A stretch of DNA of 63,262 bases, filler included, from Ministeria vibrans ATCC 50519 (taxonomy: Eukaryota > Protista > Filasterea): NCBI GenBank assembly GCA_943704425.1. It is 10 parts of 10 records of this genome, joined end to end, with 100 filler letters (N's around TTAATTAATTAA, not from the genome) between each part and the next. Parts side by side here need not be neighbours in the genome. Positions count along the whole stretch, not along the records: positions 28,752 to 54,865 come from CALSCP010000916.1; 9 more parts are not named here. One strand, written 5' to 3'. The stretch's first letter is position 1. Each line of letters starts with the position of its first letter. Shown here piece by piece: positions 33,400-54,460 of the stretch. Under the pieces are notes generated by a model. The model did no database searches. It was not told the DNA's origin and was given only the letters and a program-made list of their open reading frames with translations. A program made the position numbers and the translations under genes.

Positions 33400-36300
33400 T
33401 TAAATGGCACACACAGCTGCGTGCACCGCACGCAAATCCCCATCGTTCAGCACCATGGCTCGTTTTTCTCCCCCTCCAGCCTTGGGCAGACACACACGCG
33501 CCGCAAGCACTCGTGCACGCTGCTCCGCAATGAGTCGCGACACATTCACAACACGACTCGGTCCCTTAACACGCTGCACCAGCGTCCGGTACGTCTCGCT
33601 GGCGCGCGTTCGCAGTGCCGCATTAATCGCGACCGACTCGGCATAGACTGCTCGCGCTCGTCGTCGCTCCACCGCATTCTCATCCGAAATATCCACCACT
33701 CGCGGCACAATCGCACGACCATTCTCCAGTCCCTTCAGCACCTCAAGCACAGTGGAGTCCCCGCTCTTCTCTTGCGTCGGAGGCGGCGGCGCTACAAACA
33801 CCAGCGGTGGCAGCGCACGCGCCATGTCGGCCGACAGCTGCGCTCGCAACTGTGCACACTCCCGACGGCACACACGCACAGCCGCCACAAGCGCACGCGT
33901 GTTGCTTGCCACCACACTCGCAGTGGAGGTCATTGATAACATTGAAGAGGTAGTGACACCACCACCACCACCACCACCACCACCACCACCAGTACTGCTA
34001 CTATTACTCGTACTGCCTCCTGCACCCTCTTCACCGCCCTTCTTGGTGGCCAGCATTTTCCGCTTCAGCTCCTTGTTGCTCACTTCCATCTCCTCCAGCT
34101 CCTGCTCGCGCGTCTCCAATGCCTCCTCCAACTCACGCAGCTCCCGTCGCAGCACCTCCACCTCATCCGCATTGGCCGCACTCGCCTCCATCTGCGCTCG
34201 CTCCTCCCGAACCGCCTTCAGTCGCGTCTCAAGCGCACTGGTGCGCGTCGCTGCCTCATCCAGCGCCTTCACCTTCTTCCGCAACTCAATATTCAGCACC
34301 TGCATCTCTTCCTCCTTGCTCCGCATGCGTCCTCGCAGCGTCTCATTCTCACTCAACTCGGCGCGTACCACACCACTCCGTTCCACCACCGCCACCGGCA
34401 CAACCACCGCTCCTCCTGCGTCGCTCATACCGCCACTGGTAGTCGTCTCCTCCTTCTTCTCCTTGCGCGCAAACTCACCGCTCATCAGTGCAGCCGTAAA
34501 CGACTTGACATGCTTGTCGGTGCTCGCCAGTGCGTGTCGCACACTCTCCATCGCATCCTCGGCAGAGCTCTCAAGCACTAATGCAAATCCAGCGCCAATG
34601 GTCGCATCGTCCACTGTTGCTGCGTCGTCCACCTCGACATTGCCACTCCCATCACCATTCACCACGCTCACCACCACTGAGCCAATGAGTCCCGCCGCAG
34701 AGGCAAACTCACGCGCAAAACCAGACGCAATGTCACGCTTCTCCTTGGTCAGTGCAATGTCCATGCACAGTCCAAGTTCGCTGCGCGCGCCCTCGGCCGA
34801 CTCGCTCGCCGCGCCCGCCCCCATCAGCGCAGGCAGTGTTGTAAGTGCCTCGTCCACATCGGTCGCCTCCAGTCCACCCACGGGTTGCATGGTGGTAGCA
34901 AGCGCAACACGACGAGCACGGTCGCGCAAACTGCTTGTGTGCATCACCACCGCCTCAATCAATGACCCAACCGCACTCTTCGTTGTCGCCGCTTCGTCTT
35001 CCGCATCCCGCAACTGTGACAACACACGAACCTCACAGAGTGTGCACGCTGCGCTCGACTGCAGTTCATCCGCCGCAATCGCAGTGCGCTCCGCGTCACT
35101 GAGTGCTCCCGTGTGCTCTTCGCCCAGTCGCATCAGCTGTCCAGCGCTCTTTCGCACATCCTCACTCGCCCCCTGTCCCGCCTGCAACACGGCAATCTCG
35201 CTTAGCTCGCGTCGCTTTAGCAGGTACAACAGACTGTCAATGCGTCGCTCGTGCACCACCACCTCGTCACGCTGCGCCCCCAACTGCAAAAATGTCTCCA
35301 CCGGCGCACGCGCAAGCCCACCCGCAATGCGTGCTGCCGCCGAGCGCAATGCCAGCAGGCGACGACACATCTCAGCGCCCGCCGACACGCGCATAAGGAG
35401 GCGACGCGAGCGAATCGTTGTCTCACTACTGCTCGTAGTTGTAGTGAGATGAACTCCAAACTGCTCGCACACCTGCTGCACTGCAATGGTGCACTTGACG
35501 GCAATGCGTCGCACCACCAAAAGCGCCGCAAGTGCCGTCATGTCGCACGCATACTGCTCGCTCGGCAGGTATGCCTGTAACATGCGCACCTGCGCCGCCG
35601 TCTGTGTCGCATCAAGACGCAACAGTTGCAGTGCCACTGCACGCTCGTTGGCACGCGCCACGTCCGTCTGCAGACGCGCGTTCTCGGCAAGCGCCGACTG
35701 AGCTGCCGCACGCACACGCGCTTGGTCCGACGTCTGCTCGGCACTCGTCGACTGCAGCGCCATCAGTGCGTCGTTGGTGCGAACCAAACGCTCTTGGTAC
35801 TGTCGCACCTGATCGCGCATGTCTCCAAGCTCACGCGTGCGCTGTTCCATCTCCCGCTCCAAATGACTCACACGCACATCCTTTGAGTCCACTTCAAGAC
35901 GCAGCTCGCGCTCCGTCTGCGAGTGCGCCTCCTCCAGCTCGTCCGACAGGTCCTTGAGCGCATCCAAGTCGTCCACTTGCTCCTGCAAATCCCGCACACG
36001 CTCCTCCAACTCAAGGTTCTTGCGCGTAAGCGACTCTACAATCGCCTCGGCACCCAACGCATCGTCCACTTGGTCCTTGAGGTCCTCCACAGCCTCCTCA
36101 GCCGTCTCCAGCGCAGTCTTGAGCGTCCCGCACTGCTCGCGCAGCTGCCCCACCTCAACCGTCTGTGCCTCCAGCTCGCGAATGCGTGCTTCGTTTTTCT
36201 TCTTGTCCGACTCACTCACATCTCGCAGTCGTACCAGCGCCTCTTTCAGTCGCTCGCACTGTGTTTCCAATGCCTTGTTCGTCACGGCGGCTCCATCGCC

Positions 36301-37360
36301 TCCTCCGCCTCCACCTTCTTTCTCCTCCTCTGCGCGAATCTCCGCCTCCAGCTGCAACTCTTCCACTTGTTCCTCGAGCAGTCGTACTCGCTCGGCGGCC
36401 GCCTCCGCCTGCTCTTCTGCCATCTCCTTGTCGAGTGTCGCCATCTCGACAGTCTCCCCAAACGTGGCAAGTTCCTTCTCCGCCGTGGCGCGTCCCTCTT
36501 TGGCCTCCTTGGCCTCTTTACGCGCCGCCTTGAGCTCCTCCTTGAGCGTCGCCTGAGCCGCCACCCACTGTTGCTTGTAGCTGGCCACTTGTTCGTACTG
36601 AACACGGTACTTGTCCAGTTCCTTGATGGCCTTGCGGTACTGTTCGCAGCGCGCCTCCAGTTGTGTGACTCGCGACGCATCACTCGACGTCGCATTGGCA
36701 GGCGTCTCGTCCGAGGCGGGCGATGGCTCATCGGCACTGGAGGAGGCAGGGGGTGCCTCGCTAGGCGTTGCAGGGGCGGGCGTGGGTGTGGGAGCGGCGA
36801 CGGCGACAGGTTCAGTGGCAGCGGCAGTTGAGGCCGTTGGCGCTGGCGTTGGCGCTGAGGACGAGGCCGCAGCGGATGCCGCGGGTGCCTCAGCCTCGTG
36901 GATGACATTCACTTGCGTCTGGCGCACAAACATGCCATAGAACTCGCCTTCTTCTTGTCCTTCCTGTTAAGACAAAAAAAAAATAAAAAAGTCAAAATGT
37001 TTCAAATGATTTCAACGATCGGTATTTCGTGTTGAGGGAGCTTAATCGACACGCCAACGCGTCAATGACCGGAGTAAGAGATGATCCTGGGATAGGGATC
37101 AAAAAGAGACCGTGGATAGACGCCATTCCGGCGAGAGTGGAGCAAGAGAGAGTTTTTGGAAATGGGTTCGTTTTTGTTCTTACGCGACATTTGAAGTAAC
37201 GCTTCTCGTTGACGACGCCGTTGTTCTTGCCATGGGGCTCGTCAAGCTCGACGCCGACCCACTTGCCCGTGGCAAACAGGGTGGGGCCGCAGTAGCGGAC
37301 AGTTCCGCGCTTTCCCTTGACTTCCACGCGCATCCCGGCGCGGATCACAGAGTCGCTCAT
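33400..37360 (-). CDS. DCTN1: Dynactin subunit 1 (p150Glued)
   Basis: CAP-Gly ([20 protein letters not shown]); [12 protein letters not shown]; [10 protein letters not shown]; [12 protein letters not shown]; long coiled coils. Confidence 0.95.
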
Positions 37361-37588
37361 GACGGTCGGCGAGGGTGCAGCGGCGGTAGTGGCTGTGCGA
37401 GAGTTGAAAAAAAAAAGTAAATGATATGTCATATGAGCAATGAGTTGACAACAGTTTTCATGTCTTTGTTATTTTGTTTGTTTCACACACTGACACACAC
37501 ACACAGTTTTGTTGACTTTACGTTTGACGATTCTTTGATTCATAAAAAACCCACTCTTTCTGCTTTCATTCACTCTCATGCACGCTCT

Positions 37589-40500
37589 CTAACAATCGGA
37601 GGAGGAGGCGACTCCGTTGCCTCGTCGGTACAGAAAAATGTCTCCGTCGTTGACCATTCCCGCCGTCCAGTCCCTCCAAATGCGCCCCACCAGCGCAGCC
37701 TGCAGTGCATCGGTCGGGTCCAGCATCCGCAGTCGTCGTCGCAGCTCAACCGCACTCACATACGTCTCATCCTCGTCAAACACCTTTCCTTTGCCCAGTG
37801 CGAGAATGAGTAGCTCAGTCAGGCGCGTCACACCCCCACTCGCAAAGCTGCTGGCGTCGCGCAGTGCGCTCGTAATGGCCTGGCGTGCGTACCCTCGAAC
37901 GGGCGCAGTGCGCTCGGCCATGGTCAGGTCCTCCTCTGGCACAATCAATGCTCCGCTGTTGCAAAAGTCGCAGAACACCAACACGTTGCCGCCCAGCCAG
38001 AAGACATCGTCGCGGAGAATGGTGGAAAGACTCAAACGTGTCAGTGGACCACCAACAGTCTCACGAGCGTCACTCAGCAGCAGACCACCCCCACTGTCCT
38101 CGGCACCATGCCCAATCAGATGCACAATCAACAGCGAGTCCTGTCCCGCACCCACTCCCGCCTTCGTGGCCAACCGTGTCGTCGCATCCACAATCAGACT
38201 CCTCCTCACTGCGTCACCCTTCTTCGAATCCACCACCGTCTCCACATCACATCCTCGATCGCCCCACATCTTCGCCAGCTGACGAACACTCTTCTGCACC
38301 TCAGGAAGATCGTCAAAGTCCTTCAGCGCAGCATTGCCCGACGACGCATACCGACTCACTCCCACGATCAACACTGACGCATGCGAGTAGATTCCCATTG
38401 CTACACCAACAAGAACGTGTCAAAAACAATTACAATCATATCAAACTACAAATACTAACGAATCGTACCTTCTTGCTTGCACCACCACCTCTTCAGCTTC
38501 AAATTGCACATCCGCTTCTGTCCATCAAAGCGTTTCAGCTCCGCATTCACAACCTCCGCATCGCGATAGTCTTCGGGCCGCTCAGCGACACTCTTCGGCG
38601 CAAACAGCGGATGCAATGGATGCGTCTCGCCCACTGCCAGTGCAAACGGATGCGCAGGCACCACCACAGCACGCCCGCGCCAGCCCCACCGCAGAGACCG
38701 CGTCGACTCACACACAGTCTCAACCAGTCGAGTCCACGTCCGCTCGCACTTGATCGCCTTCTCTCCCAGCATCTCCACTCGAATGAACGACTCGTTGCTG
38801 TTGAGGCGCAGTCGCACAGACTCACACCCGTCCATCGTCAGCGCATTCGTGCATCGTTGCGTCGCTTCAATGTGAATGGCAAGTGGACACGCCCGCCATA
38901 GGGCCACCACAACCAGATGGAAGGTGGCCAGTGACACTGGAAGCTCCTCCCACTTGCCAGTGTCCGCATTGTGCGTCATCTGGTACAGGAACAGCACTGC
39001 GGGCGCCGGTGGTGCGTTCGCCACAAAGGGCGCACTCTCAGGCAGCAGCATCGGGATGAGAAGGTGGTCATGATGCGCATGCACCAGACTGAGGTGCTCC
39101 AGACACGCCATGAATGCTGACACGTCCGTCACATCTGCACCTGCCAGCACAGGGTCGCCGCTGCTCTTTGTCTTGGCCGCCGTCCACACCAGCCACTCCG
39201 CCACCTCCCGACAGAATCCCGCCTCGGACCGTGTTTTTGACTCGTCCAGAGACACAAGCAGGCGCTCGGTGCGCTTCACGTCGACCGAACGACCCGCCTG
39301 CGTCACCTTCGTCAGCATTTCCTTGGCACGCGCACTCCCCGCTCGTTCCCACCGTGCCATCACCACCGAACACAGCAGTTCAACCGCCGAGATCAGCCGC
39401 GGAATGTCAAACACAATTGTGTCCTTCTCGTCCAGCGACTGCGCCGTCGCATCTTGGCGGCACACCACAATGTCCGCCGCAGACTCAAGGTACGGCACAA
39501 GTTCGGCCCGCACCTTTGCCCCGTCCGGCATAAGATCAGTCAACATGACGGATGGCTCAGTGCTCAGCTGGAGCGTGTCAAGGTGTTCGACAGAGGAGAG
39601 CAGTGGAATCTCGTTCAGTCGGGCGGCACGACCAAGCAGGTCCTGTGCACACACATACTCCATCGGCAGCTTGCGTCGTCGCGGTGCGACGTGCAGTGCC
39701 TGTGTGAGTGCGCTGAAGCCCACCTTCTTGCTGCTGCCCACCTGGAAGAACGGCAGAGCAGAGTCGGCAGGCTGCATCAAGTGATCGCCCAACTGCAACC
39801 CAACGAGATGGAACACTCGGTCGGAGACGGCCGCCAGCAGGTCGACGGGAACTGTGTTGTTGGGGAATGTGTCAACGTGAGTGCCCACAATGAGCACACG
39901 GAAGTATGAGTCGTCGGTCGAGGGCACTTGGTGCGCAATGATGTGGGCCCACTTGGACAGGTGTTCGTACTGTCGCTGTGCCTTGACTGGATCGTCCATG
40001 ACAGACAGGTCAAATACAAGCAGGTAGGCCGACTCGGAGCCCATGAAGAGCGCAGGAAGCGAGTCAAACATCTCTTCACCTAACAATAACAGCATCAATA
40101 GGAGTGGAAGACAGTGTTCTTTGTCGTCTGCGCTATACCGGCAAAGTCAAATGTTTCAAGGTCAATGTGGCCCTCGCGCAGTTCAGACTCGAGAAGCGTG
40201 TGCACGGCCGACATGGTGACTGAACTGGGCGTGGGGGCGGCCGGTGGTGGGGTGGATGGGCACGGAGAGGATGGTGATGATGAGGGAGAAGTGGTCGTCG
40301 AGGACGGACTGAGCAGCCTCTTGAACCACTGCAAAACCGAGGTCGCTGTTGGACCGACTGCTTGAGCGGCAGGCTGTGATGTCTGCTGTGCAGTCGTGGT
40401 GGTGGTGGTTGTCGTAGTGGTTGTCGATGGTGTGGTCTGCTGCTCGTCCTCCTCCGCTCGTTGCGCCCTCCAATGAGACTGGCCAGGCGGTGTTCCTCTT

Positions 40501-42381
40501 GCGGCACTGCCTCAAACACGCCTGTCGCCCCATCCAGCACCATTCGCACTCGCTCCAGTCGAGTGGCCACTGACCGATCTGCCTCCGTTGGCAGTGTCTG
40601 TCCGCGCAGTGCACACAGCAGGGCCGTTTTGCCCGCCAGCACTGCCCCCAGACACAACAGTTTGATCGTGCGTGGTTCTACTGATCCTCGCTCAATGGCC
40701 GCCTCAAATGCCCTCTGGTACACGCTGGGAATCAAGAAAAGAACGGCATGTTAAAAACGAGAGAGATGTATTCGTCTGTTGTAGCACTCACGTTTTGACA
40801 AACTGCGCAATGGACCATCGGTGGACTGTCTTGTCTGCACAGTGGACAATCAGTGTGTTCCCATCCGACGAGAACTCAATTGTGTCCACTCTAAACAAAC
40901 ACACAAAAGCGAGTGAGTGAGTAAGTGATGAAAGGAATTGAACACACAAACCTGGAAGGAACTGCAAATTGTGTGAGAATGGTTCCTTTGAATCGGGTCC
41001 ACACTTTGATTGTTCTGTCACCTGATCCACTGTAGATGGTGGTTCCGTCTCGAGACACAGCGACTGAGAGAATATGACTAAAAAGCAGAAACAAGCACAT
41101 ATTAGACAGGTCTTCTCTGCACAATTCAACTCACTTCGTGTGTTCCTTCAATGTCCGCTCGCACTCTCCAGTCAGCACATTCCACACTTTCACCGTCAAG
41201 TCGAATGAGCCACTGATGACGTGTCGTCCGTCAAAGGAAAACACTGCTGACCGGACAGGACTGCAAACGAAGAATATAAGAGACCAAACCACACGGAATA
41301 GTGATTGAGTGACTTACTCAGAGTGTCCACTGAGTGTCTTGAGACACTTTCCACTCACAACAGACCATATTTTGATTGCGTCGTCGGATGACCCACTGAG
41401 CACTGTTTGTCCATCAAATGAGAATGCCACGCACAGCACATAACTGTAAACCACAAAACAATCAATACATCAGAAGAAATTACACTCTTTCTCGATTTGA
41501 ATTACTTTGAATGTCCCTTAAACGTGATTTCACACTTTCCCGTTTGACTGTCCCACAGTTTCATTGTGTGGTCGTCTGAGCCACTCAGTATTTTCGTTCC
41601 GTCCGGTGAAAATCTCACTTCTCCTACAACACTGAAATGCATAAGAATGAACATCAACACACAGAATCACTCTTACTGTGTGTGGTCTTTCAGAATGAGC
41701 AGACACTCTCCCGATTGACTGTCCCACACTCGAACTGTATCGTCAGGACTGCCACAGACCAATTTGAGTCCATTGGGTGAGAAATCAATAGAACAGACAG
41801 CACTACACAAATGAATATTAGACACAGTGACACTCAGTCGGGTATCTCTCTCTTTCTCTAACCTTGTGTGACCAGTGAGAGTGAGAGTGCACTTTCCACT
41901 GTGCATTTCCCACACTCTGACTGACCCGTCCTCTGATCCAGTGACCACTCGCAGTCCATCGGGAGACACTCTCACACTCGACACACCACTAAAAGAAACC
42001 CAAAGATGGTCAGACACCAATCTCCATTGTGTTCATGGTAATTGAAAATGAAATGTCCAATTTGTGCACAACACAACGCACAGAAAGAACGGGTATTCTT
42101 ATTCGTCTCGTTTCAACTTACCCTTCGTGCATGAGTGTTCTGACACACTTTTTGTCTTTCACAGACCACACTTTGGCTGTGCTGTCGCCTGATGCACTCA
42201 CAACCCACTGCTCGTCTGGAGACAGTGTAACTTCATAAATGAAACCAGAGTGACCAGTGAGAGTGACCACTCCACAGTCAACCTGTTCCCCTCCTTTGCC
42301 GTCCACTTCCACCAGCGCAACATGCGATCCTTTGTCAACAGCGACCAGTGAGTCGTCAACAGAGTGGCGAATAGCGGACAT
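37589..42381 (-). CDS. WD40 - Roc GTPase - COR - caspase-like (Peptidase C14) protein; 11 predicted exons; one apparent frameshift near 40470
   Basis: About 8 WD40 repeats. G1 GAVLAGKT, G3 DFAG (spliced), YLLVFDLS, G4 IVGTHVD, then a COR-like region. C14 motifs [17 protein letters not shown] and VFCDFCNSG. All ten GT-AG junctions were checked manually and keep frame. Confidence 0.8.
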
Positions 42382-43875
42382 TCAGTTCTGAAAGAGAAAC
42401 CCCATTTGTTGAGTGATCATAGAACAGTTGAGCACGACACCCTCCCGGTCCAACCGATACTTCACCGCTCTTCCACACCCCCACTCTCTCCCACTCTCTA
42501 CAGCGACAAGAAGAAGAGTGTTCTGTTTTGGCCATATTTTATCCACTGAATGACAAACAAACCAAACCTAATAATAACAAACACACTCTCACCCATGTCC
42601 CACCACCAATACACACACTGTAGCCCAACCATGCCATATGGGCTGTCCCTCACCACAATATCGTCTTCTAGAATTAATTCCAGTTCGACTCGACCGAAAA
42701 CTACATTCGGCCTACCGCCCAACACACACACACAATGCGATCCCACGGCGTCCCAGCAGCCCCCGCACCCCCCACGGCACCCCCCTGCCCCGTGCCGCAC
42801 ACCAATAGCAAGCCCTGTGGCTCTCTGTCGACTCCTTCAAAATTTTAAGGGCTCACCCACACACAAAACACAGACAAAAACGCACAAGGNNNNNNNNNNN
42901 NNNNNNNNNNNNNNNNNNNNNNNNNNNNNNNNNNNNNNNNNNNNNNNNNNNNNNNNNNNNNNNNNNNNNNNNNNNNNNNNNNNNNNNNNNNNNNNNNNNN
43001 NNNNNNNNNNNNNNNNNNNNNNNNNNNNNNNNNNNNNNNNNNNNNNNNNNNNNNNNNNNNNNNNNNNNNNNNNNNNNNNNNNNNNNNNNNNNNNNNNNNN
43101 NNNNACCCCCCTGCCCCGTGCCGCACACCAATAGCAAGCCGTGTGGCTCTCTGTCGACTCCTTCAAAATTTTAAGGGCTCACCCACACACAAAACACAGA
43201 CAAAAACGCACAAGGACTCTGTTCACTCCCGCCAAACGCAGCGAACCACCCACCTCAATCCAGTCTCTTGTGGTGACGGCACCGGCGGCGAGTATTGCAC
43301 AAACTGTAAGCACAGAAACGAAAATGTTTAGTTTCAGCCACAAAAACAAAAACGACTCTGCGGATACTCTGACGAAAATCACCCAGCCAACACGTCAGTC
43401 TGGTCAGAGGCACTCAGCAATCGAGACGAACAATTGAGAGAATTTTTTGAATGATTTTTTTTTTTGGAATTTGTGAAGAAAAAGTCGCCCGATATTTTAT
43501 TAATTATTATTAGTGATCAGTTCACCCTTAAAAATAAACCAGCCCTGGCTAGGTATCCCATATGACCTACCTACGTATTTAAGAGCCAATGTATAGTTGT
43601 GACGACTGTGGCGTCCTCACGGAGGAGATGACCCACCTTTTAACCAAACTCCCGCGACAAAATAGTAAACAATACAGTTGTGAAGTTATATCAGCTGATA
43701 TCCCACCCTACTTTCCCCTTGCCTTGGTCTGGGGATGCATCTTATTAATCACATGACGAGAAAAAATAACAAAGAAATTATATTTTATTGATAAACAAAA
43801 CGCACTCATATGACTCTCCGATTCTCTCCGATTCTCTCAGCACACTCACATTCTCTCCCTCTCTCTTTCAGTCTC

Positions 43876-46800
43876 TCATACATCCGAGTCAAACGTCGGA
43901 GTCAAATCCGACAATGTGAACGCCTGTACATTTGCTGGTTCAGCAGCTCCCGCAAACTCATTTCCACCCGTAGGCCTAATAGGAACAAAAAAAAATGAGT
44001 ACCACAGTCTCTCTTACTATGTCTCTCTCTCCCTCTCTTACTTGAACATGGAGCTCATTCGAAGCATTCCAGCACCGCCCATAGGATCACTATCCACGTT
44101 GTAGAAGGGGTCCGCGGCGGGCGCTCTCCCTCTTGACCTGTACAAAAAACACAATAAATATGAGACACGACAAACAAATTTCAAGAATAGCATACTTTGA
44201 AGAAGAGGAACCGGACGACTTGGGCATCGATGGTAATGAGCAAGAGCAAGGACAGGCGCACGAGGCACACTTCTCCTTGAGCTGTTCACGGTGCTTGAAG
44301 CAGAAGAAGGCAAGGATAGCGGCAACAACGAGGCCAATGACGACGCCCGCGGCAATGCCTGCGGCGCTACCGCCCGACGACGGCTGTGTGTTGATCTGAC
44401 AGAAGTCGCCGGCAAAGGGTGGCAAACATGTACAGTTGTAGCCGTTGACAGTGTCGTTGCAAAGACCGCCGTTGAAGCAGGGCGACGACGCGCACTCGTC
44501 CACCTCCACTTCGCAGTTGGTACTGTTGAATCCACTCGCGCACATGCAAATGTACTCGTCCGTGCCAAACGCATTGACGCACGTCGCGCCGTTGGTGCAC
44601 GGCGACGACAGACACTCGTCGACGTCCAACTCGCAATGGGTGCTCATGTAGCCGCTCGCACAGCTGCACGTGTAGCCGTCCACTCCGTCTGTGCAGGTAG
44701 CGCCGTTCTGGCACGGGCTCGACGCGCACTCGTCGACGTTGGTCTCGCAGTTGGTACCCGTGAATCCACTGGCGCATGTGCACACAAAGTTGTCCACGTT
44801 GTTCGTGCAGGTGGCGCCATTCGAGCAGGGACTCGACGCACACTCGTCCATGTTCGACTCGCAGTTGGTACCCGTGAACCCTGAGGCACAGGTGCACGTG
44901 AAGCCGTCCACATTGTCCGTGCAGGTAGCACCATTCGAGCAGGGGCTCGACGCACACTCGTCCATCTCCGACGCACACACAACTCCTGTGAAACCACTGG
45001 CGCACGTGCACATGTAGCCGTTCACCTGATCGGTGCACGTTGCGCCGTTGGTGCAGGGACTCGACGCGCACTCGTCAATATCCGACTCGCAGTTGATACC
45101 GGTGTAGCCGGCGGTGCAAATACACGTGAACATGTCAACATCGTTGACACAGGTGGAGGCAAACTGACAGGGTGACGAGTCGCATTCGTTGACGGTAAGC
45201 ATGGCAAATTGGGCAGACGAAAGCGACGTCTGCGCACACAGAGCAGTGGTACTGCCGGTACACAAGGCGTTGCGACGGCGACCGTTGCTCGACGGCGGAG
45301 CGTCAGCAAGGGTCCAGGGACCCGGATTGTTCAGCGGAGACGACGAGTAGATGAGTGCATCGGAGCTGGGCGGAGCACCGTTGCCCGTCTCAATCATAAT
45401 CGTGATGGGCGAGCTAAAGTCGGTGCCATTCAGCTCGGGCACGTTGATCGAGACAATCGTGCTGTTATCGGCAACTTCCGCATTGGAGGGCAGCGTCTTC
45501 TCTTCGCCAGTGGGTATGTTGTTCACAAGAAGAGTGCCGCCCGCGGGAATGACACCCTCCGGCACGACAATCGTCACCTTGTCCATGACAAAGGTGCCGC
45601 CAGCACCCGTCGAGTTGAAGCCCGTCAGCTCACAGTTGACACCCACGTAGCCCAAGACGCAGCTGCACAGGAAGCCGTCCACCACGTCGGTACAGGTACC
45701 GTTGTTAGAGCACGGACTGGACGCACACTCGTCGACTTCCGACTCGCACGTGACGCCCGTAAATCCTGACGCACACGTACACGTGAATCCGTCAATGTTG
45801 TCGGTGCAGCTACCTGCATTGGTACACGGACTCGACGCACACTCGTCCATCTCCGAGCCGCACTGCACCCCAGTAAAACCACTGGCACAAGTACATGTAA
45901 AAGCGTCCACGTTGTCGGTACACGTTGCGCCATTCGAACAGGGACTCGACAGGCACTCGTCAAGTTCCGTCTCACACTGCACACCGGTGTAGCCCGACGC
46001 GCACACGCACTCAAACAGGTTCGCCATGGATCCCTCAGAGCACGTGGCGCCATTCGAGCAAGGGCTCGACGCACACTCATCCATGTCCGACTCGCAGTTG
46101 ATGCCGGTGAAACCGGCGGCACACGAACACGTAAAACCGTCGACATTATCTGCGCAGACTCCGCCGTTCGAGCAAGGGCTCGACGCACACTCGTCCACTT
46201 CCGACTCGCACATGACACCAGTAAATCCACTGGCACAGGTGCACACGAAGAGGTCAGGCATGGAGCCCTGCGAGCAGGTGGCACCGTTCGAGCAAGGGCT
46301 CGACGCGCACTCATCCATGTCTGACTCGCAGTTGATGCCAGTGAAGCCGGCGGGACAGGTGCACAGGAAGCCGTTAATCACATTGGCGCAGGTGGCGCCG
46401 CTTGAGCATGGACTCGACACACACTCGTCCTGATCAGCATCGCATACGGTGCCGAAGAAACCGTCAGGACAGGCGCATGTGAACCCATCGACATTGTCGG
46501 TACACGAACCACCGTTGGAGCACGGCGACGAGATGCACTCGTCCAGTTCCGTCTCGCACACCACACCCGTGTAGCCCGAGGCGCACGTGCACATGTAGCC
46601 ATCGACATTGTCGGTGCACGTCGCACCGTTGGAGCACGGACTCGAGCCACACTCGTCAAAGTCAGTCTCACATGTGATGCCCACAAATCCACTGTGGCAG
46701 GCACAGGTAAAGCCATCCACAATGTCGGTACAGGTGCCCGCATTGGTACACGGACTCGACGCACACTCGTCCATCTCCGAGCCGCACTGCACCCCAGTAA

Positions 46801-49800
46801 AACCACTGGCACAAGTACATGTAAAAGCGTCCACGTTGTCGGTACACGTTGCGCCATTCGAACAGGGACTCGACAGGCACTCGTCAAGTTCCGTCTCACA
46901 CTGCACACCGGTGTAGCCCGACGCGCACACGCACTCAAACAGGTTCGCCATGGATCCCTCAGAGCACGTGGCGCCATTCGAGCAAGGGCTCGACGCACAC
47001 TCATTCATGTCAGNNNNNNNNNNNNNNNNNNNNNNNNNNNNNNNNNNNNNNNNNNNNNNNNNNNNNNNNNNNNNNNNNNNNNNNNNNNNNNNNNNNNNNN
47101 NNNNNNNCACTGCACACCGGTGTAGCCCGACGCGCACACGCACTCAAACAGGTTCGCCATGGATCCCTCAGAGCACGTGGCGCCATTCGAGCAAGGGCTC
47201 GACGCACACTCATTCATGTCAGACTCGCAGTTGATGCCGGTGAAACCGGCGGCACACGTACACGTAAAACCATCGATATTATCTGCGCAGACTCCGCCGT
47301 TCGAGCAAGGGCTCGACGCACACTCGTCCACTTCCGACTCGCAATTGATGCCAGTGTAACCGCTGGCGCAAGTGCATGTAAATCCGTCCACGTTGTCGGT
47401 GCATGTAGCGCCATTCGAGCAGGGGCTCGAGGCACACTCGTTGTTTTCCGAGTCACACACAATGCCAAAAAATCCGCTGGCACACGTACAGGTGAATCCA
47501 TCGACAATGTCGATACAGGTGGCCCCATTGGTGCACGGACTCGAGGCACACTCGTCCATGTCCGACTCGCAGTTGACACCGGTGTAGCCGCTGGCGCAAG
47601 TGCATGCAAAGTTGTCGACGTTGTCGGTACAGGTGGCACCGTTGGAGCACGGGCTTGAGGCACACTCGTCCATGTCCGACTCGCAGTTGACACCGGTGTA
47701 GCCGCTGGCGCAAGTACACGTAAAGCCGTCCACGTTGTCAGTGCATGTGGCACCATTCGTACACGGACTCGAGGCACACTCGTCCATTTCGGAGCCACAG
47801 AGAACCCCAGTGAAACCACTCGCGCACGTGCACACATATCCATCGACTCCGTCGGTACAGGTGGCGCCGTTTGAGCACGGACTCGACGCGCACTCGTCAA
47901 CGTCCGTCTCGCACTGGATACCGACAAAGCCGCTGGGACAGGCGCACGAGAAACTATCAAGGCTCTGCGAGCAAGTACCAGTATTTGAACAGGGACTCGA
48001 AGCACACTCGTCAATGTCCGACTCGCAATGAACGCCCGTGTAGCCGGAAACACACTGGCAAATAAAGGCGGCAGGCACATTGACGCAGGTCGCAGAGTTG
48101 ACGCACGGTGACGACGCACACTCGTCTGAGTCCGCCTCGCATTGAATACCAAAGAAACCGGGCGGGCAAGTGCACTCGTAGGCGCCAGGCGTGTTGGCGC
48201 ATGTACCGCCGTTGGAGCAGGGCGACGACAAACACTCATCCATGTCGGACTCGCAGTGCGTGCCAGTGTATCCCTGTGCACACACACACATGTAACCGTC
48301 CACCTGATCGGCGCACGTCGCACCATTCGAGCAAGGACTCGACGCACACTCGTCAATGTTGGTCTCACAATCGAGGCCCGTGTAGCCAATGACACAGGTG
48401 CAAGTGTAGCCATCAATCATTTCTGAGCAGGTTCCACCATGCGCACACGGCATCGAGGCACATTCGTCAACCTCAACGCCACACTGCACACCAGTGTAGC
48501 CCGAGGCGCACGTACACACAAAGCCATCAACATCATCCGCACAAGTGGCGCCATTCGAGCACGGACTCGACGCACACTCATCCACATTGGTCTCGCAGTT
48601 GATGCCAACAAAGCCCGAGGCGCACGTACACCCAAATCCATCGACATTGTCCGAGCAAGTGGCACCATTGGAACATGGGCTCGACGCGCACTCGTCAACG
48701 TCCGACTCGCAGTTGACACCGGTGTAGCCGCTGGCGCAAGTACACGTGAACGCGTCCACGTTGTCGGTGCATGTGGCGCCGTTGGAACACGGCGACGAAG
48801 CACACTCGTCCATTTCGGAGTCACACTGTACACCGGTGAAGCCACTGGCACAAACACACACATAGCCGTCAACGTCGTCGTTACAGGTGGCGCCGTTGGA
48901 GCACGGGCTGGACAGGCACTCGTCGACATTGGTCTCGCAATTGACGCCGACATACCCACTGGCACAAGTACATGTAAAAGCGTCCACGTTGTCGGTACAC
49001 GTTGCGCCATTGGAACACGGACTCGATGCGCACTCGTCCATTTCAGAGCCACACTGTACACCGGTGAACCCACTTGCGCACGTGCACACAAATCCATCGA
49101 CATCGTCAGCACAGGTGGCACCATTGGAGCATGGACTCGAAGCACATTCATCCACGTTGGTCTCACAGTTGGTGCCGACAAAGCCGCTGGCGCACACGCA
49201 CGAGAAGCCCAGAAGTGAGTCCTGACAAGTGGCACCGTTGGAACAAGGGCTCGAGGCACACACCTCCAGGTCGGTCTCACACAGCGTACCGACTGCACCG
49301 GGCGGACAGGTGCATGTAAAACCATCGATGTTGTCGGTGCACGTGCCGGTGTTCTGGCACGGACTCGAGGCACACTCGTTGTTTTCCGAGTCACACACAA
49401 TGCCAAAAAATCCGCTGGCACACGTACAGGTGAATCCATCGACGATGTCGATACAGGTGGCCCCATTGGTGCACGGACTCGAGGCACACTCGTCCATGTC
49501 CGACTCGCAGTTGACGCCGGTGTAGCCGCTGGCGCAAGTGCATGCAAAGTTGTCGACGTTGTCGGTACAGGTGGCACCGTTGGAGCACGGGCTTGAGGCA
49601 CACTCGTCCATGTCCGACTCGCAGTTGACACCGGTGTAGCCGCTGGCGCAACNNNNNNNNNNNNNNNNNNNNNNNNNNNNNNNNNNNNNNNNNNNNNNNN
49701 NNNNNNNNNNNNNNNNNNNNNNNNNNNNNNNNNNNNNNNNNNNNNNNNNCATGCAAAGTTGTCGACGTTGTCGGTACAGGTGGCACCGTTGGAGCACGGG

Positions 49801-52800
49801 CTTGAGGCACACTCGTCCATGTCCGACTCGCAGTTGACACCGGTGTAGCCGCTGGCGCAACTGCATGCAAAGTGCCCGTGGTTGTCCGAGCATGTGGCGC
49901 CGTTGGAGCACGGCGACGAGGCACACTCGTCCATGTTGCTCTCGCACACAATGCCGGTGAAGCCACCAGCGCAAATACACGAGAAGCCATCCACTCCGTC
50001 CGCGCAGGTGGCGCCATTGGAGCACGGCGAGGAAGCACACTCGTCAATGTTGGTCTCGCAGTTGACACCCGTGTACCCACTGGCGCAAGTGCATGCAAAA
50101 CCATCGACGTTGTCGGCGCACGTCGCGCCATTGGAGCAGGGGCTCGACGCGCATTCGTCCATCTCCGAGCCACACACGACACCGGTGAAACCACTCGCGC
50201 AAGTGCACACGAATCCATCCACTCCGTCCGTACAGGTGGCGCCATTGGAGCAGGGGCTTGAGCTGCACTCGTCAATGTTGGTCTCGCAGTTGGTACCGAG
50301 GTATCCGCTGGCACACGTGCACGCAAAGCCATCCAGGTTGTTGATACACGTGGCGCCATTCGAGCAAGGGCTCGACGCACACTCGTCAATGTCCGACTCG
50401 CACTGTGTGCCCGTGTAGCCAGGAACGCAGTCGCACGCAAAGGCACCTGGATTGTCGTTGCAGGTCGCACCATTGACACAGGGCGACGAAGTGCACTCGT
50501 TCACATCCGTCTCGCACGACTCACCCACAAAGCCGGGAGCGCACGAGCAGCTAAAGCCCTGATGAGAATCACTGCACGTGCCACCGTTGGAGCAGGGCTG
50601 CGAAGCGCACACGTCCAAGTCAAATTGACACTGGTCGCCAGCGGTACCGCCAAGACAGTTGCACGTGTACTCGTTGATTCCGTCGACACAAGTGCCGGCG
50701 TTACGGCAGGGCGATGAAGCACACTCATCGACATTGGTTTCGCACATGAGTCCCACAAAGCCGGGAACGCAAGCGCACGTGAAGGAATCGAGAAGGTCCG
50801 TGCAGGTACCACTCGACTGACACGGCGACGAATCGCACTCGTTGATCTCCACGTCACACAGAGTCCCAGTATAGGCACTGCTGCAAGTGCAAGTGTATCC
50901 ATCGACCACGTCGATGCATGTGGCGCTGTTCTGGCATGGGCTTGACGCACACTCGTTCACGTTGGTCTCGCAGTTGACACCAAAGAAGCCGGAGGCGCAT
51001 GAACAGGTGAAGCCATCCACGTTGTCCGTGCATCCAGCTCCGTTCGAGCAAGGGCTCGACGCACACTCGTCCACGTCCGATTCGCAGTTGACACCAGTGT
51101 ATCCGCTGGCGCAAGTACATGTGAACGCGTCCACGTTGTCGGTGCACGTGGCGCCGTTGGAGCACGGTGACGAAGCACACTCGTCCATGTTCGATTCGCA
51201 GTTGACACCAGTAAACCCACTCGCGCAAGTACATGTGAATCCATCGACATTATCAGTGCAAGCGCCACCGTTGGTACACGGGCTCGACGCGCACTCGTCC
51301 ATCTCCGACCCACAATTGACACCGGTGTATCCGCTCGCGCAGGTGCACACAAAGTTGTCCACATTGTCAGAGCAAGTGGCACCATTGGTGCACGGGCTCG
51401 ACGCACACTCGTCCATATCCGACTCGCAGTTCACACCAGTGTAGCCACTCGCGCAAGTACACGTAAAGCCGTCAACGTTGTCAGTGCATGTGGCACCGTT
51501 TGAGCATGGGCTCGAGGCGCACTCGTCCACCTGCGACTCACAGTGTGTGCCCACAAAGCCGCTGGCGCACGTGCATGAGTACGAGTTGGTGCCGTCGACG
51601 CAGGTGCCGCCGTTGCTGCACGGCTGCGAGACGCACTCGTCAATGTTGCCGTCACACACGGTTCCGGCAAAACCGCTGTCGCAAATGCATGTGTACGAAT
51701 TGATGCCGTCGGTACAGGTGCCGCCATTGGCACACGGTGTCGAAGCACACTCGTCGACATTGGTCTCACAGAGAACGCCCACAAACCCGTTGAGGCACGA
51801 GCAAGAGTAAGAGGTGATACCGTCGACACAGGTGGCGTCGTTCTGGCAAGGGCTCGAGGCACAGTCATCAATGTTCGTGGAGCAGGTGACGTCGGTGAAG
51901 CCGGCGGCACAAGTGCACATGTACGAGGTGACACCATCAAGGCAGGTGGCGCCATTGGCGCACGGGTCGGAGGCACAATCGTCAATGTTGTTGCCACACA
52001 GGTTGCCCTGGTAGCCGGCAGCGCAGGTGCACGAGAAACCATTGACAGCATCAGAACAGGTGGCACCGTTGCGACACGGCGACGAGTTGCACTCGTCGTT
52101 GTTGACATCGCAAAGGGTGCTTGAGAAACCTGAAGCGCACGTGCACGTAAAGCCGTTGACGTTGTCGGTGCAGGTAGCACCATTGGTGCACGGGCTCGAC
52201 GCGCACTCGTCAATGTTGTTGCCACAGAGTGTGCCATCGTAGCCAGAAGCGCAGGTGCAGGTGAATCCATCGACCTCGTCGTTGCAAGTGGCGCCGTTGA
52301 GGCAAGGAGTGGACGCACACTCGTTTGTGTTCGAACCACACCTGGTACCAAAAAAGCCCGAAGCGCAGATGCAAGAGTAGCCGTCGACCTCGTCGGTGCA
52401 GGTGGCGCCGTTGGAGCAAGGCGACGAGTCGCACTCGTCGTTGTCGATTTGGCAGAGGTTGCCTGAGAAACCCGAGTGGCACGAGCACGTGTAAGAGGTG
52501 ACACCGTCGTTGCAGGTTGCGGCATTGCTGCAGGGAGACGAATCACAATCGTCAATGTTTGTGGAACACAGGGTGTCGGTGTAGCCCGGGACACAGGTAC
52601 ACGAGTAGCCATTGACTTCGTCGTTGCACGTCGCACCGTTCTGGCAGGGGTTCGAAGCGCACTCGTTGACGTCGGTCGAACACGTCGGGCCGGCGTAGCC
52701 TGCTGCACACGCACACGTGTACGACGTAACACCGTCGTTGCAAGTTGCACCGTTGGCGCAAGGATCGGAGGCGCAGTCGTCAATGTTGGTCAAGCACGAC

Positions 52801-54460
52801 ACATCCGTGTAGCCAGAGGCACAGGTGCAAGAGTATGAGTTGACGCCATCGTTACAGGTGGCACCATTGGCACACGGGTCGGAAGTACAGTCATCGATAT
52901 TATTGGTGCAAGTGGTGCCGCTGAAACCAGTGCCTGCGCAGTTGCAGGTGTACGAGTTGACACCGTCATTGCAAGTACCACCATTCTGGCACGGGCTCGA
53001 CACGCACTCGTCAATGTTGGTCGAGCAGGTCGCATCAGTGTAGCCAGGAGCACAAGTGCAAGTGTACGAGTTGACACCGTCATTGCAAGTGCCTCCATTG
53101 GCGCACGGGTCGGAAGTGCAGTCATCGACATTATTGGTGCAAGTGTTGCCGGTGAAGCCCGTGCCTGCGCAGTTGCAGGTGTACGAGTTGACACCGTCAT
53201 TGCAAGTGCCTCCATTCTGGCACGGGCTCGACACGCACTCGTCAATGTTGGTCGAGCAGGTCGCATCAGTGTAGCCAGGAGCACAAGTGCAAGTGTACGA
53301 GTTGACACCGTCATTGCAAGTGCCTCCATTGGCGCACGGGTCGGAAGTGCAGTCATCGACATTATTGGTGCAAGTCGTGCCGCTGAAACCAGTGCCTGCG
53401 CAGTTGCAAGTGTACGAGTTGACACCGTCATTGCAAGTACCACCATTGGCGCACGGGTCGGAAGTACAGTCGTCGTCGTTGACGGCGCAGGTATCGCCGC
53501 TGAAGCCAGACACGCAACTGCAGGTGTACGAGTTGACACCGTCATTGCAAGTGCCTCCATTGGCGCACGGGTCGGAAGTGCAGTCGTCGATATTATTGGT
53601 GCAAGTCGTGCCGCTGAAACCAGTGCCTGCGCAGTTGCAAGTGTACGAGTTGACACCGTCATTGCAAGTGCCTCCATTGGCGCACGGGTCGGAGGTGCAG
53701 TCATCGACATTATTGGTGCAAGTGTTGCCGGTGAAGCCCGTGCCTGCGCAGTTGCAGGTATACGAGTTGACACCGTCATTGCAAGTGCCTCCATTGGCGC
53801 ACGGGTCGGAAGTGCAGTCGTCGTCGTTGACGGCGCAGTTATCGCCGCTGAAGCCAGACACGCAACTGCAGGTGTACGAGTTGACACCGTCATTGCAAGT
53901 GCCTCCATTGGCGCACGGGTCGGAGGCGCAGTCGTCGATATTATTGGTGCAAGCGTTGCCGGTGAAGCCCGTGCCTGCGCAGTTGCAGGTGTACGAGTTG
54001 ACACCGTCATTGCAAGTGCCTCCATTGGCGCACGGGTCGGAGGCGCAGTCGTCGATATTATTGGTGCAAGCGTTGCCGGTGAAGCCCGTGCCTGCGCAGT
54101 TGCAGGTGTACGAGTTGACACCGTCATTGCAAGTGCCTCCATTGGCGCACGGGTCGGAGGCGCAGTCATCGACATTGCTGGTGCAAGTGGTGCCAGTGAA
54201 GCCCGTGCCTGCACAGTTGCAAGTGTACGACTCGACGCCGTCATTGCAAGTGCCGCCATTGGCGCACGGGTCGGAAGCGCAGTCGTCAATGTTCACCTCG
54301 CAGAAATCGCCGTTGTATCCATCGACACATGTGCACACAACATCCCCCTACACACACGTACACACACACACACACACACACACAAAGAGATACAGCCATA
54401 AGTGGGGGCACGAAGAATAAGAGGTGACCCGGCGGCTTGGCCAGGCGTGCAGTGGCGACA
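43876..54460 (-). CDS. Giant single-pass EGF-repeat receptor (~80 Ca-binding EGF repeats, ZU5-like insert, TM helix, short tail); Notch/Crumbs/fibropellin-like; N-terminus uncertain, two N gaps
   Basis: DECASSPCSNGATC....F.C.C..G(Y/F).G..CE repeats across ORFs 48417..54338, 47005..50040 and 44090..47143. TM IAAGVVIGLVVAAILAFFCF. Two spliced tail exons end FDSDV*. Confidence 0.88.

Follow-up and report, generated by a model that had tools for sequence, protein, structure and literature searches.

Is an array of WD40 repeats in which each repeat lies on an exon of its own, all of the same length and phase, a cassette that diversifies by exchange of its exons, or is the exon plan fixed and does diversity arise in another way? 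This question is raised by a gene on the minus strand of a stretch of 63,262 nt from the filasterean Ministeria vibrans ATCC 50519 (assembly GCA_943704425.1). This stretch, called the window here, consists of 10 parts of 10 records joined end to end, and the gene lies in the part from CALSCP010000916.1 (28,752 to 54,865). Receptors with hypervariable repeats are known from plants, animals and fungi (NLRs) and from brown algae (ROCO-LRR). The original prediction was that six 126-nt exons (E1 to E6) form a modular, diversifiable recognition domain of a "Roco-caspase". We find that amino acid changes are concentrated on four positions of each blade, whereas framework codons, introns and the exons for Roc-COR and the protease are conserved, a pattern characteristic of receptors of the immune type. 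Probably, each of the six exons stands for one blade of a propeller with eight blades, and the gene belongs to a family of sensor-switch-protease receptors with a fixed, old exon architecture. On the same reading, and with the same reservation, the spliced product of about 1,370 residues starts with a WD40 propeller, continues with a Roc-COR GTPase module and ends in a caspase-like protease.

An array of one-blade exons

E1 to E6 are all exactly 126 nt long, with a pyrimidine tract and AG ahead of each and GT right after it, and the five introns between them are short (60, 45, 62, 57 and 57 nt; 31-40% GC). Since each exon is open only from its second base, where its sole open frame begins, the flanking introns are all phase 2. 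The first coding exon terminates in phase 2 as well, at the same position of the repeat, and in the whole WD part 8 of 8 introns are phase 2 and the exon lengths are divisible by 3. Transcript contigs from four public runs have their splice joints exactly at the borders of the 126-nt exons. The joint from the 99-nt exon that follows E6 to 40724 is exact in four runs, and the internal coordinates of two contigs of about 1 kb make sense only if E3 to E6 are all there in order, followed by the 99-nt exon and then by the exon after it. The same length, phase and content in six consecutive exons cannot be chance. Borders, frame, Pfam scores of the single exons and spliced contigs all agree on six WD40 exons of phase 2-2, as had been proposed, and the arithmetic that went with this proposal is correct: with phase 2 throughout and lengths that are multiples of 3, any of the six could be dropped or doubled in frame.

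When the exons were translated and searched singly with the Pfam WD40 model (PF00400; gathering cut-off 27 bits), E1 to E6 scored 30.9-39.0 bits and the first coding exon 37.1 bits; the 99-nt exon gave only weak matches to propeller families. The array is longer than six repeats, the first coding exon, the six 126-nt exons and the 99-nt exon adding up to eight. Each 126-nt exon spans from just past a GH-[ST] motif up to the next GH-[ST] and holds strands a-b-c-d, that is, one structural blade and not the conventional, offset 'WD repeat'. The last repeat, on the 99-nt exon, has strands a-c only; the absent d strand corresponds to 27 nt, exactly the difference between 126 and 99. A segment near the N terminus of the first coding exon, ending in TLTGHSG, resembles a ring-closing d strand. 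As judged from these sequence features, the propeller would have eight blades, with the ring closed by the N-terminal d strand.

The GC content at third codon positions (GC3) changes abruptly within the gene, from 0.41-0.63 in the WD exons to 0.61-0.71 in the Roc-COR and protease exons and in neighbouring genes (intervals 40952-42381 and 37589-40724 of the window). The same break is found in two paralogues, L012 and L008 (0.32-0.51 versus 0.66-0.68). Either the short, AT-rich introns have a regional effect on composition, or the WD module may have had a separate history.

Alleles differ at four positions of each blade

Four sequences of the gene were compared as alleles: the window and three metagenome scaffolds from three samples that were found via the COR exon. 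L001 contains the whole gene, L010 is without E1 behind a gap of N's and L011 begins inside E2; the whole eight-repeat array is covered by the window and L001 only. Two copies of one paralogue, L004 and L012, to which the COR exon had led as well, served as a further pair.

The window and L001 are 96.7% identical overall, but the differences are unevenly spread. The six WD exons differ by 2.4-10.3% each, with E2 as the most divergent (10.3%), as compared to 5 of 281 nt in the five introns between them, 1.0% in the COR exon, 1.7% in the protease exon and 0.2% in the 3' untranslated region (UTR). Codon counts in the six WD exons gave 0.061 for the proportion of nonsynonymous differences (pN) and 0.044 for that of synonymous differences (pS); the ratio of nonsynonymous to synonymous changes (dN/dS) was 0.20 for the COR exon and 0.19 for the protease exon. 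Among all four alleles, E3 to E6 differ by about 5.2% on average and the introns from E2 down to the Roc exon by about 0.6%, and the 99-nt exon is nearly invariant.

The replacements were then assigned to positions, with extra amino acid states in the four alleles and the paralogue pair summed over the blades (41 whole codons per exon). Altogether, 35 of 51 extra states fall on positions 1, 3, 19 and 21 (binomial 6e-24). At these hot codons pN is 0.368; in the remaining 37 codons pN is 0.016 and pS 0.035. Hot codons change by 1-3 nt, and codons 2, 18, 20 and 22 are identical including their third bases. The codon that is split by the intron (two bases, the intron, then T) is variable, too, for example S/K, H/D or N/S/F. 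The hot spot is also a site of indels: L004:1213-1341 and L012:1029-1154 (129 and 126 nt) differ by one codon at the hypervariable start of the blade-2 exon.

What are these positions? Position 2 is a conserved valine and position 20 a conserved aspartate, so that the pattern reads x-V-x where strand a begins and, at a distance of 18 residues, x-D-x in the b-c turn. The interaction hotspots that WD40 propellers have on their top face are R1-2, R1 and D-1, which correspond to residues 16, 18 and 34 of G-beta (Wu et al., PMC3419727), and positions 1, 3 and 19 match this register (PMC3419727). In the HET-E/HET-D proteins of Podospora, four codons (7, 9, 25 and 27) are under positive selection (Paoletti et al., PMC1805685); one pair of them encloses a conserved residue in the d-a loop and the other pair one in the b-c turn, and all of them are at the top of the propeller (PMC1805685). 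Positions 1, 3, 19 and 21 share this geometry. Judged by this register, the variable residues probably lie along the propeller's top face. A diversifiable WD40 domain of the recognition type had been predicted, and this part of the prediction is supported by replacements that cluster, in each blade, on four positions of the predicted top face, where pN greatly exceeds pS. The check for positive selection at surface residues that had been suggested points in the same direction when done by codon counts (pN 0.368 at the hot codons versus a pS of 0.035 elsewhere), the surface being assigned by register.

It is very unlikely that the propeller is an ordinary scaffold of a signalling Roco protein, without a role in recognition, and that its variation reflects relaxed constraint or artefacts of sequencing and assembly. 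Roco proteins, LRRK2 among them, do often have WD40 domains (PMC3341825), three of the alleles come from metagenome scaffolds and the window copy is frameshifted. However, relaxed constraint would spread the changes, but 69% of the extra states are on 10% of the positions, and pN is lower than pS in the rest of the codons. A general error or a mixing of paralogues, which differ by 35-46% in the COR exon, is ruled out by identical introns and neighbouring codons, and the same hot positions vary in the independent pair L004/L012. In addition, several of the same variants are present in contigs of runs filed under other organism labels: positions 41198-41199 (E5 codon 21) are changed as in L010, and positions 41756 (E2 codon 16) and 42243 (first hot codon of repeat 1) as in L001. 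Because several variants recur in other runs, the variants are not metagenome artefacts, and the spliced contigs suggest that they are expressed.

Could the diversity be made by a templated or targeted mutation process, i.e. by micro gene conversion from paralogous blades or by site-directed hypermutation? The hot codons often differ at 2-3 bases right beside identical flanking codons, variant strings recur across blades and alleles (for example, the same residues at positions 19-21) and there are at least eight related genes as possible donors. Nevertheless, we regard such a process as unlikely: donor tracts have not been demonstrated, conversion from paralogues would import synonymous and framework differences, of which none are seen beside the hot codons, and this piece has neither a reverse transcriptase nor a template repeat close to the gene.

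A probably fixed and old exon plan

The symmetric phase permits shuffling of blades in principle, but its occurrence is not supported by the data presented here. The six repeats share only 27-51% of their amino acids and 41-60% of their nucleotides, and 38% at third codon positions; with nucleotide and third-position values this low, no duplication or homogenisation has taken place recently. In all parts of the array that the four allele sequences span, neither the number nor the length of exons changes. The lack of E1 in L010 was considered as a polymorphism in repeat number and rejected, as it is a scaffold gap of 100 N. The blades are colinear between the gene studied here and its paralogue L012: blades at corresponding positions have an identity of 0.59-0.88, all other pairings one of 0.29-0.65. 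Variation of exon order and number among paralogues and alleles, as had been envisaged, was therefore not found: the blades are colinear, and exon number is the same where covered.

Transcripts tell the same story. All supported joints are constitutive, and no exon-skipping joint is among them, although rare isoforms could escape an analysis that is restricted to contigs. One joint that runs backwards, from 42266 to 41161 (runs X7 and X19, with four other letters between), was accepted neither as a back-splice nor as an isoform. Its minus-strand reading gives a WD d-strand, and it probably represents another family member that aligned in two pieces.

In the paralogues L012/L004, L003, L008 and L006 there is also one blade per exon, in phase 2 and mostly with 126 nt, although some blade exons have 120, 123, 129 or 132 nt; L005, L007 and L009 begin too near the COR exon to reveal the array, and L002 (P0002) comprises part of the COR exon only and holds no WD exons. 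The exon plan is common to at least four paralogues. Because these share the plan and their blades are colinear, the layout of one blade per exon is older than the family.

From exon to exon the alleles look like a mosaic: L011 is identical to L001 in E5 and the first part of E6, but to L010 in E4. This pattern could result from recombination in the conserved introns. It is not counted as evidence, because metagenome assemblers can switch strains at identical introns.

All this makes it quite improbable that the symmetric 126-nt exons are an active cassette in which new specificities come from duplication, loss or alternative splicing of blades or from their exchange between paralogues, a model suggested for the leucine-rich-repeat exons of algal ROCO genes. 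Phase-2 introns and exon lengths that are multiples of 3 would allow loss or gain in frame, the 120-132-nt variants of the paralogues would fit, near-identical introns between alleles could be sites of recombination, the alleles look like exon-by-exon mosaics, and the exons for the leucine-rich repeats (LRRs) of brown-algal ROCO genes are phase 2 as well (PMC11378527). But the blades are too different from each other for recent duplication, they are orthologous by position in the paralogues, the exons do not change in number or length where covered, the only apparent loss is an assembly gap, contigs hold the covered exons in order without a supported skipping joint, and the mosaic may come from strain switches of the assembler. 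Moreover, a closed propeller tolerates the loss of a blade poorly. Thus, what the data support of the modular, diversifiable domain is diversification by substitution at four positions, and what they do not support is exon skipping, duplication and swapping. A single-copy gene with invariant splicing, constant repeat number and repeats under purifying selection had been named as the outcome that would speak against such a domain; repeat number is indeed constant where covered, yet the gene has paralogues and the hot codons do not have a purifying pattern.

The Roc-COR module

The Roc, COR, protease and WD exons were searched one at a time and not as the joined protein. In the Roc exons, motifs G1, G3 and G4 are present and GTHxD is invariant, but Pfam reported only Ras, with 11.1 bits and below the cut-off; the Pfam models Roc and COR had no significant match to the Roc or COR exons. 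A profile search against the PDB gave the Roc domain of LRRK2 as best match, at an E value of 0.15, which is weak but coherent. A phmmer search against the PDB found nothing for either C-terminal exon.

Structure is more telling. An AlphaFold2 model of the COR exon, built from the paralogue alignment, has a predicted local distance difference test score (pLDDT) of 70-97 over residues 140-536. All 16 Foldseek matches of this model at E<=1e-3 are Roco proteins; the best one is Chlorobium tepidum Roco (E 2.6e-6), and LRRK1, LRRK2 and crystal structures of RocCOR and COR are also among them (6hlu, 8e05, 8fo7, 3dpu and 3dpt). In a protein atlas the COR exon scored 0.96 to COR-A/Roc clusters. As far as the model goes, a COR domain directly follows a Ras-like GTPase, and this tandem is what defines ROCO proteins.

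The Roc exon of the window has two extra nucleotides (CG, 40460-40459) in its low-complexity insert, between the P-loop and DFAG. They split the exon into two frames, and the motifs share one frame only after removal of the 2 nt. They are missing from L001, L010 and L011 and from the contigs of both covering runs (X7 and X17). In the same insert a piece of 33 nt (40315-40347) is missing in L001, which is a length difference in frame.

The caspase-like domain

The last exon contains HLxGHG and DFCNSG, both invariant in 7 sequences. These His and Cys motifs come after strands 3 and 4 of the prediction (E88-96 and E138-145). The exon scored 0.96 to Peptidase_C14 clusters in the protein atlas, and profiles against the PDB gave weak matches to metacaspase-4 and GSU0716. 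The best fold matches of its AlphaFold2 model (pLDDT 54.5) are the paracaspase MALT1, GSU0716 and caspases 9, 6 and 2, with E values of 5e-3 to 0.1. From motifs and model together we assign, with moderate confidence, a caspase-like domain with a conserved His/Cys pair to the last exon. The label "Roco-caspase" thus holds: Roc-COR is indicated by Foldseek, and the caspase-like part by atlas, profiles, fold matches and the His/Cys motifs.

In a loop of the caspase-like domain (38027-38036) the window is without nine bases, another length difference in frame. L001 and three of four runs carry a 9-base insertion there, and the fourth run has a different insertion of equal length (9 bases).

A family that is nearly invisible to sequence searches

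An exhaustive HMMER search of 1.84 billion representative proteins returned only four clusters. A word-index search revealed seven paralogues with 54-65% identity, all of them on metagenome scaffolds of one sample series; the habitat is marine. The COR exon differs by 35-46% between known paralogues, and a scan of metagenome contigs of the Joint Genome Institute (JGI) with this exon found no relative. WD40-Roc-COR-caspase-like genes form an expressed family. Since the family is almost invisible to sequence searches, with four clusters in 1.84 billion proteins, similar receptors may be widely missed.

Possible function and relation to known receptors

How could such a protein work? The top face of the propeller would bind a fast-changing partner, for example a pathogen protein or a non-self protein. 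Binding would alter the nucleotide or dimer state of Roc-COR, which would act as a switch or dimeriser and bring the fused caspase-like domains together; their activation would then lead to proteolytic signalling or cell death. The logic of sensor, switch and effector would resemble that of NLRs and the apoptosome, with Roc-COR in the place of the ATPase of signal transduction ATPases with numerous domains (STAND). Because its switch is a GTPase, the protein is not a member of these families. The phase-2 one-blade exons are most likely a trace of the origin of the array by tandem exon duplication, and this layout would now be a fixed trait of the family. Current diversification would be by substitutions in the hot codons, which ordinary recombination possibly reassorts, rather than by a change in the order or number of exons.

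Several points weigh against this reading. The placement of the variable residues on the top face rests on sequence register. Ligand binding, GTPase and protease functions are all predicted from sequence and models. The hot positions were first spotted in one pair and later confirmed in L010, L011 and the paralogue pair L004/L012; the comparison comprises four alleles, with pN and pS taken from codon counts, and three of the four are metagenome scaffolds. Linkage of exons within these scaffolds may be an artefact of assembly, and the 'alleles' could instead be very recent paralogues. The extra CG in the Roc exon is either an assembly or sequencing error or the mark of a strain-specific pseudogene. 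As to the protease, Pfam scores are below the gathering cut-offs (CHAT 19.5 bits with a cut-off of 24, Peptidase_C14 14.4 bits with 21.4) and the AlphaFold2 model is poor, with a pLDDT of 54.5.

The likeness to the fungal NWD/HNWD proteins (HET-E/HET-D/HET-R of Podospora anserina) is close in the sensor. These, too, have a WD40 sensor with a 42-residue unit, four diversifying positions that form two pairs flanking conserved residues, 18 apart (PMC1805685), and a link from the sensor to an output in cell death, which is predicted for the protein studied here. However, the fungal NTPase is NACHT and not Roc-COR, the effector is a HET domain and not caspase-like, and the order of domains is reversed. 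Fungal repeats exchange units and evolve in concert (PMC1805685), whereas those described here are 41-60% identical, constant in number in the copies compared and encoded by one exon each.

LRR-ROCO proteins of brown algae (Ectocarpus, Saccharina) share the Roc-COR core, N-terminal repeats on one phase-2 exon each and diversifying selection on the ligand-binding face (PMC3341825, PMC11378527). Their repeats are LRRs on 72-nt exons instead of WD40 blades on 126-nt exons. The algal exons are alternatively spliced and shuffled until paralogues can no longer be aligned, in contrast to the colinear blades and ordered contigs found here, and a caspase domain has not been reported for them, whereas the protein studied here has a fused caspase-like domain.

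Apaf-1 in the apoptosome and NLR-type proteins likewise combine a WD40 sensor, a nucleotide-dependent switch or oligomeriser and caspase activation (PMC7159879), but Apaf-1 uses an AP-ATPase and recruits a separate caspase via CARD, whereas here the switch would be a Roc-COR GTPase that has the caspase-like domain on the same polypeptide. LRRK2, LRRK1 and bacterial Roco proteins share the fold of the Roc-COR tandem (Foldseek E 2.6e-6 to 1e-4), and LRRK2 also has a WD40 domain, which is C-terminal and not N-terminal as here. Their output is a kinase or absent instead of a caspase-like protease, and their sequence similarity to the gene described here is almost nil.

A limited literature search gave no description of a Roco protein that combines a hypervariable WD40 sensor with a caspase-like output. 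The family would add a third solution, in a marine protist, that unites a hot-position geometry like that of HET-E/D, a Roc-COR module like that of LRRK2 and a fused caspase-like protease. This points to a convergent assembly of receptors from sensor, switch and death protease. It would also offer a compact system on a single polypeptide for studying how Roc-COR transmits ligand binding. It is tempting to go further and to speculate, tentatively and with more doubt than belief, that these proteins are an undescribed class of eukaryotic receptors for innate immunity or allorecognition, in which Roc-COR replaces the STAND ATPase and directly drives a fused caspase-like executioner, and in which the near-identical introns are recombination spacers that reassort the specificities of blades between alleles ('blade shuffling' at constant exon number).

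Gene model and neighbouring genes

The coordinates of the gene are summarized in Table 1. The start codon ATG is at 42381, with an in-frame TGA immediately upstream.

Table 1 Exons and 5'-UTR intron of the gene, listed from its 5' end, with positions along the window.
Feature	Position	Strand	Evidence and content
5'-UTR exon, 3' end	43254..43285	-	loose end of transcript contigs at 42389 matches 43256-43285 exactly; donor GT at 43253
5'-UTR intron	42388..43253	-	holds an assembly gap (N run 42890-43104)
First coding exon	42122..42387	-	N-terminal d-strand-like segment and WD repeat 1; WD40 37.1 bits
E1, 126 nt, one WD40 blade, phase 2-2	41863..41988	-	WD40 39.0 bits; contigs
E2, 126 nt, one WD40 blade	41677..41802	-	WD40 32.8 bits
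E3, 126 nt, one WD40 blade	41506..41631	-	WD40 37.9 bits; contigs
E4, 126 nt, one WD40 blade	41318..41443	-	WD40 37.3 bits; contigs
E5, 126 nt, one WD40 blade	41135..41260	-	WD40 32.2 bits; contigs
E6, 126 nt, one WD40 blade	40952..41077	-	WD40 30.9 bits; contigs
99-nt exon, phase 2-2, last degenerate repeat	40792..40890	-	exact joints 40890/40952 and 40724/40792
Exon for N-terminal half of Roc	40139..40724	-	P-loop GAVLAGKT, Thr/Pro/Ser-rich low-complexity insert, DFAG
Exon for C-terminal half of Roc (invariant GTHxD) and COR	38469..40079	-	about 400 further residues after GTHxD
Last exon, caspase-like domain	37589..38400	-	invariant HLxGHG and DFCNSG; stop codon 37591-37589

The N run in the 5'-UTR intron is flanked by a stretch of 111 nt (42779-42889 and 43105-43215) that is duplicated at 99% identity. 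The duplicate is probably an artefact of gap closure, and hence the length of this intron is uncertain.

Downstream, on the minus strand (33403-37468), is a gene similar to that of dynactin p150Glued, with Pfam matches to CAP-Gly (76.8 bits) and Dynactin (91.5 bits). On the other side, at 44093-54338 and also on the minus strand, lies a giant gene with very long open frames that encode EGF-like repeats of 38 residues with a period of 114 nt; Pfam EGF matched 19 and 38 stretches in two of its frames. Some of its units (45975-46089, 46899-47013 and 47108-47222) are 98-100% identical, which suggests recent duplication of units or a collapse in the assembly.

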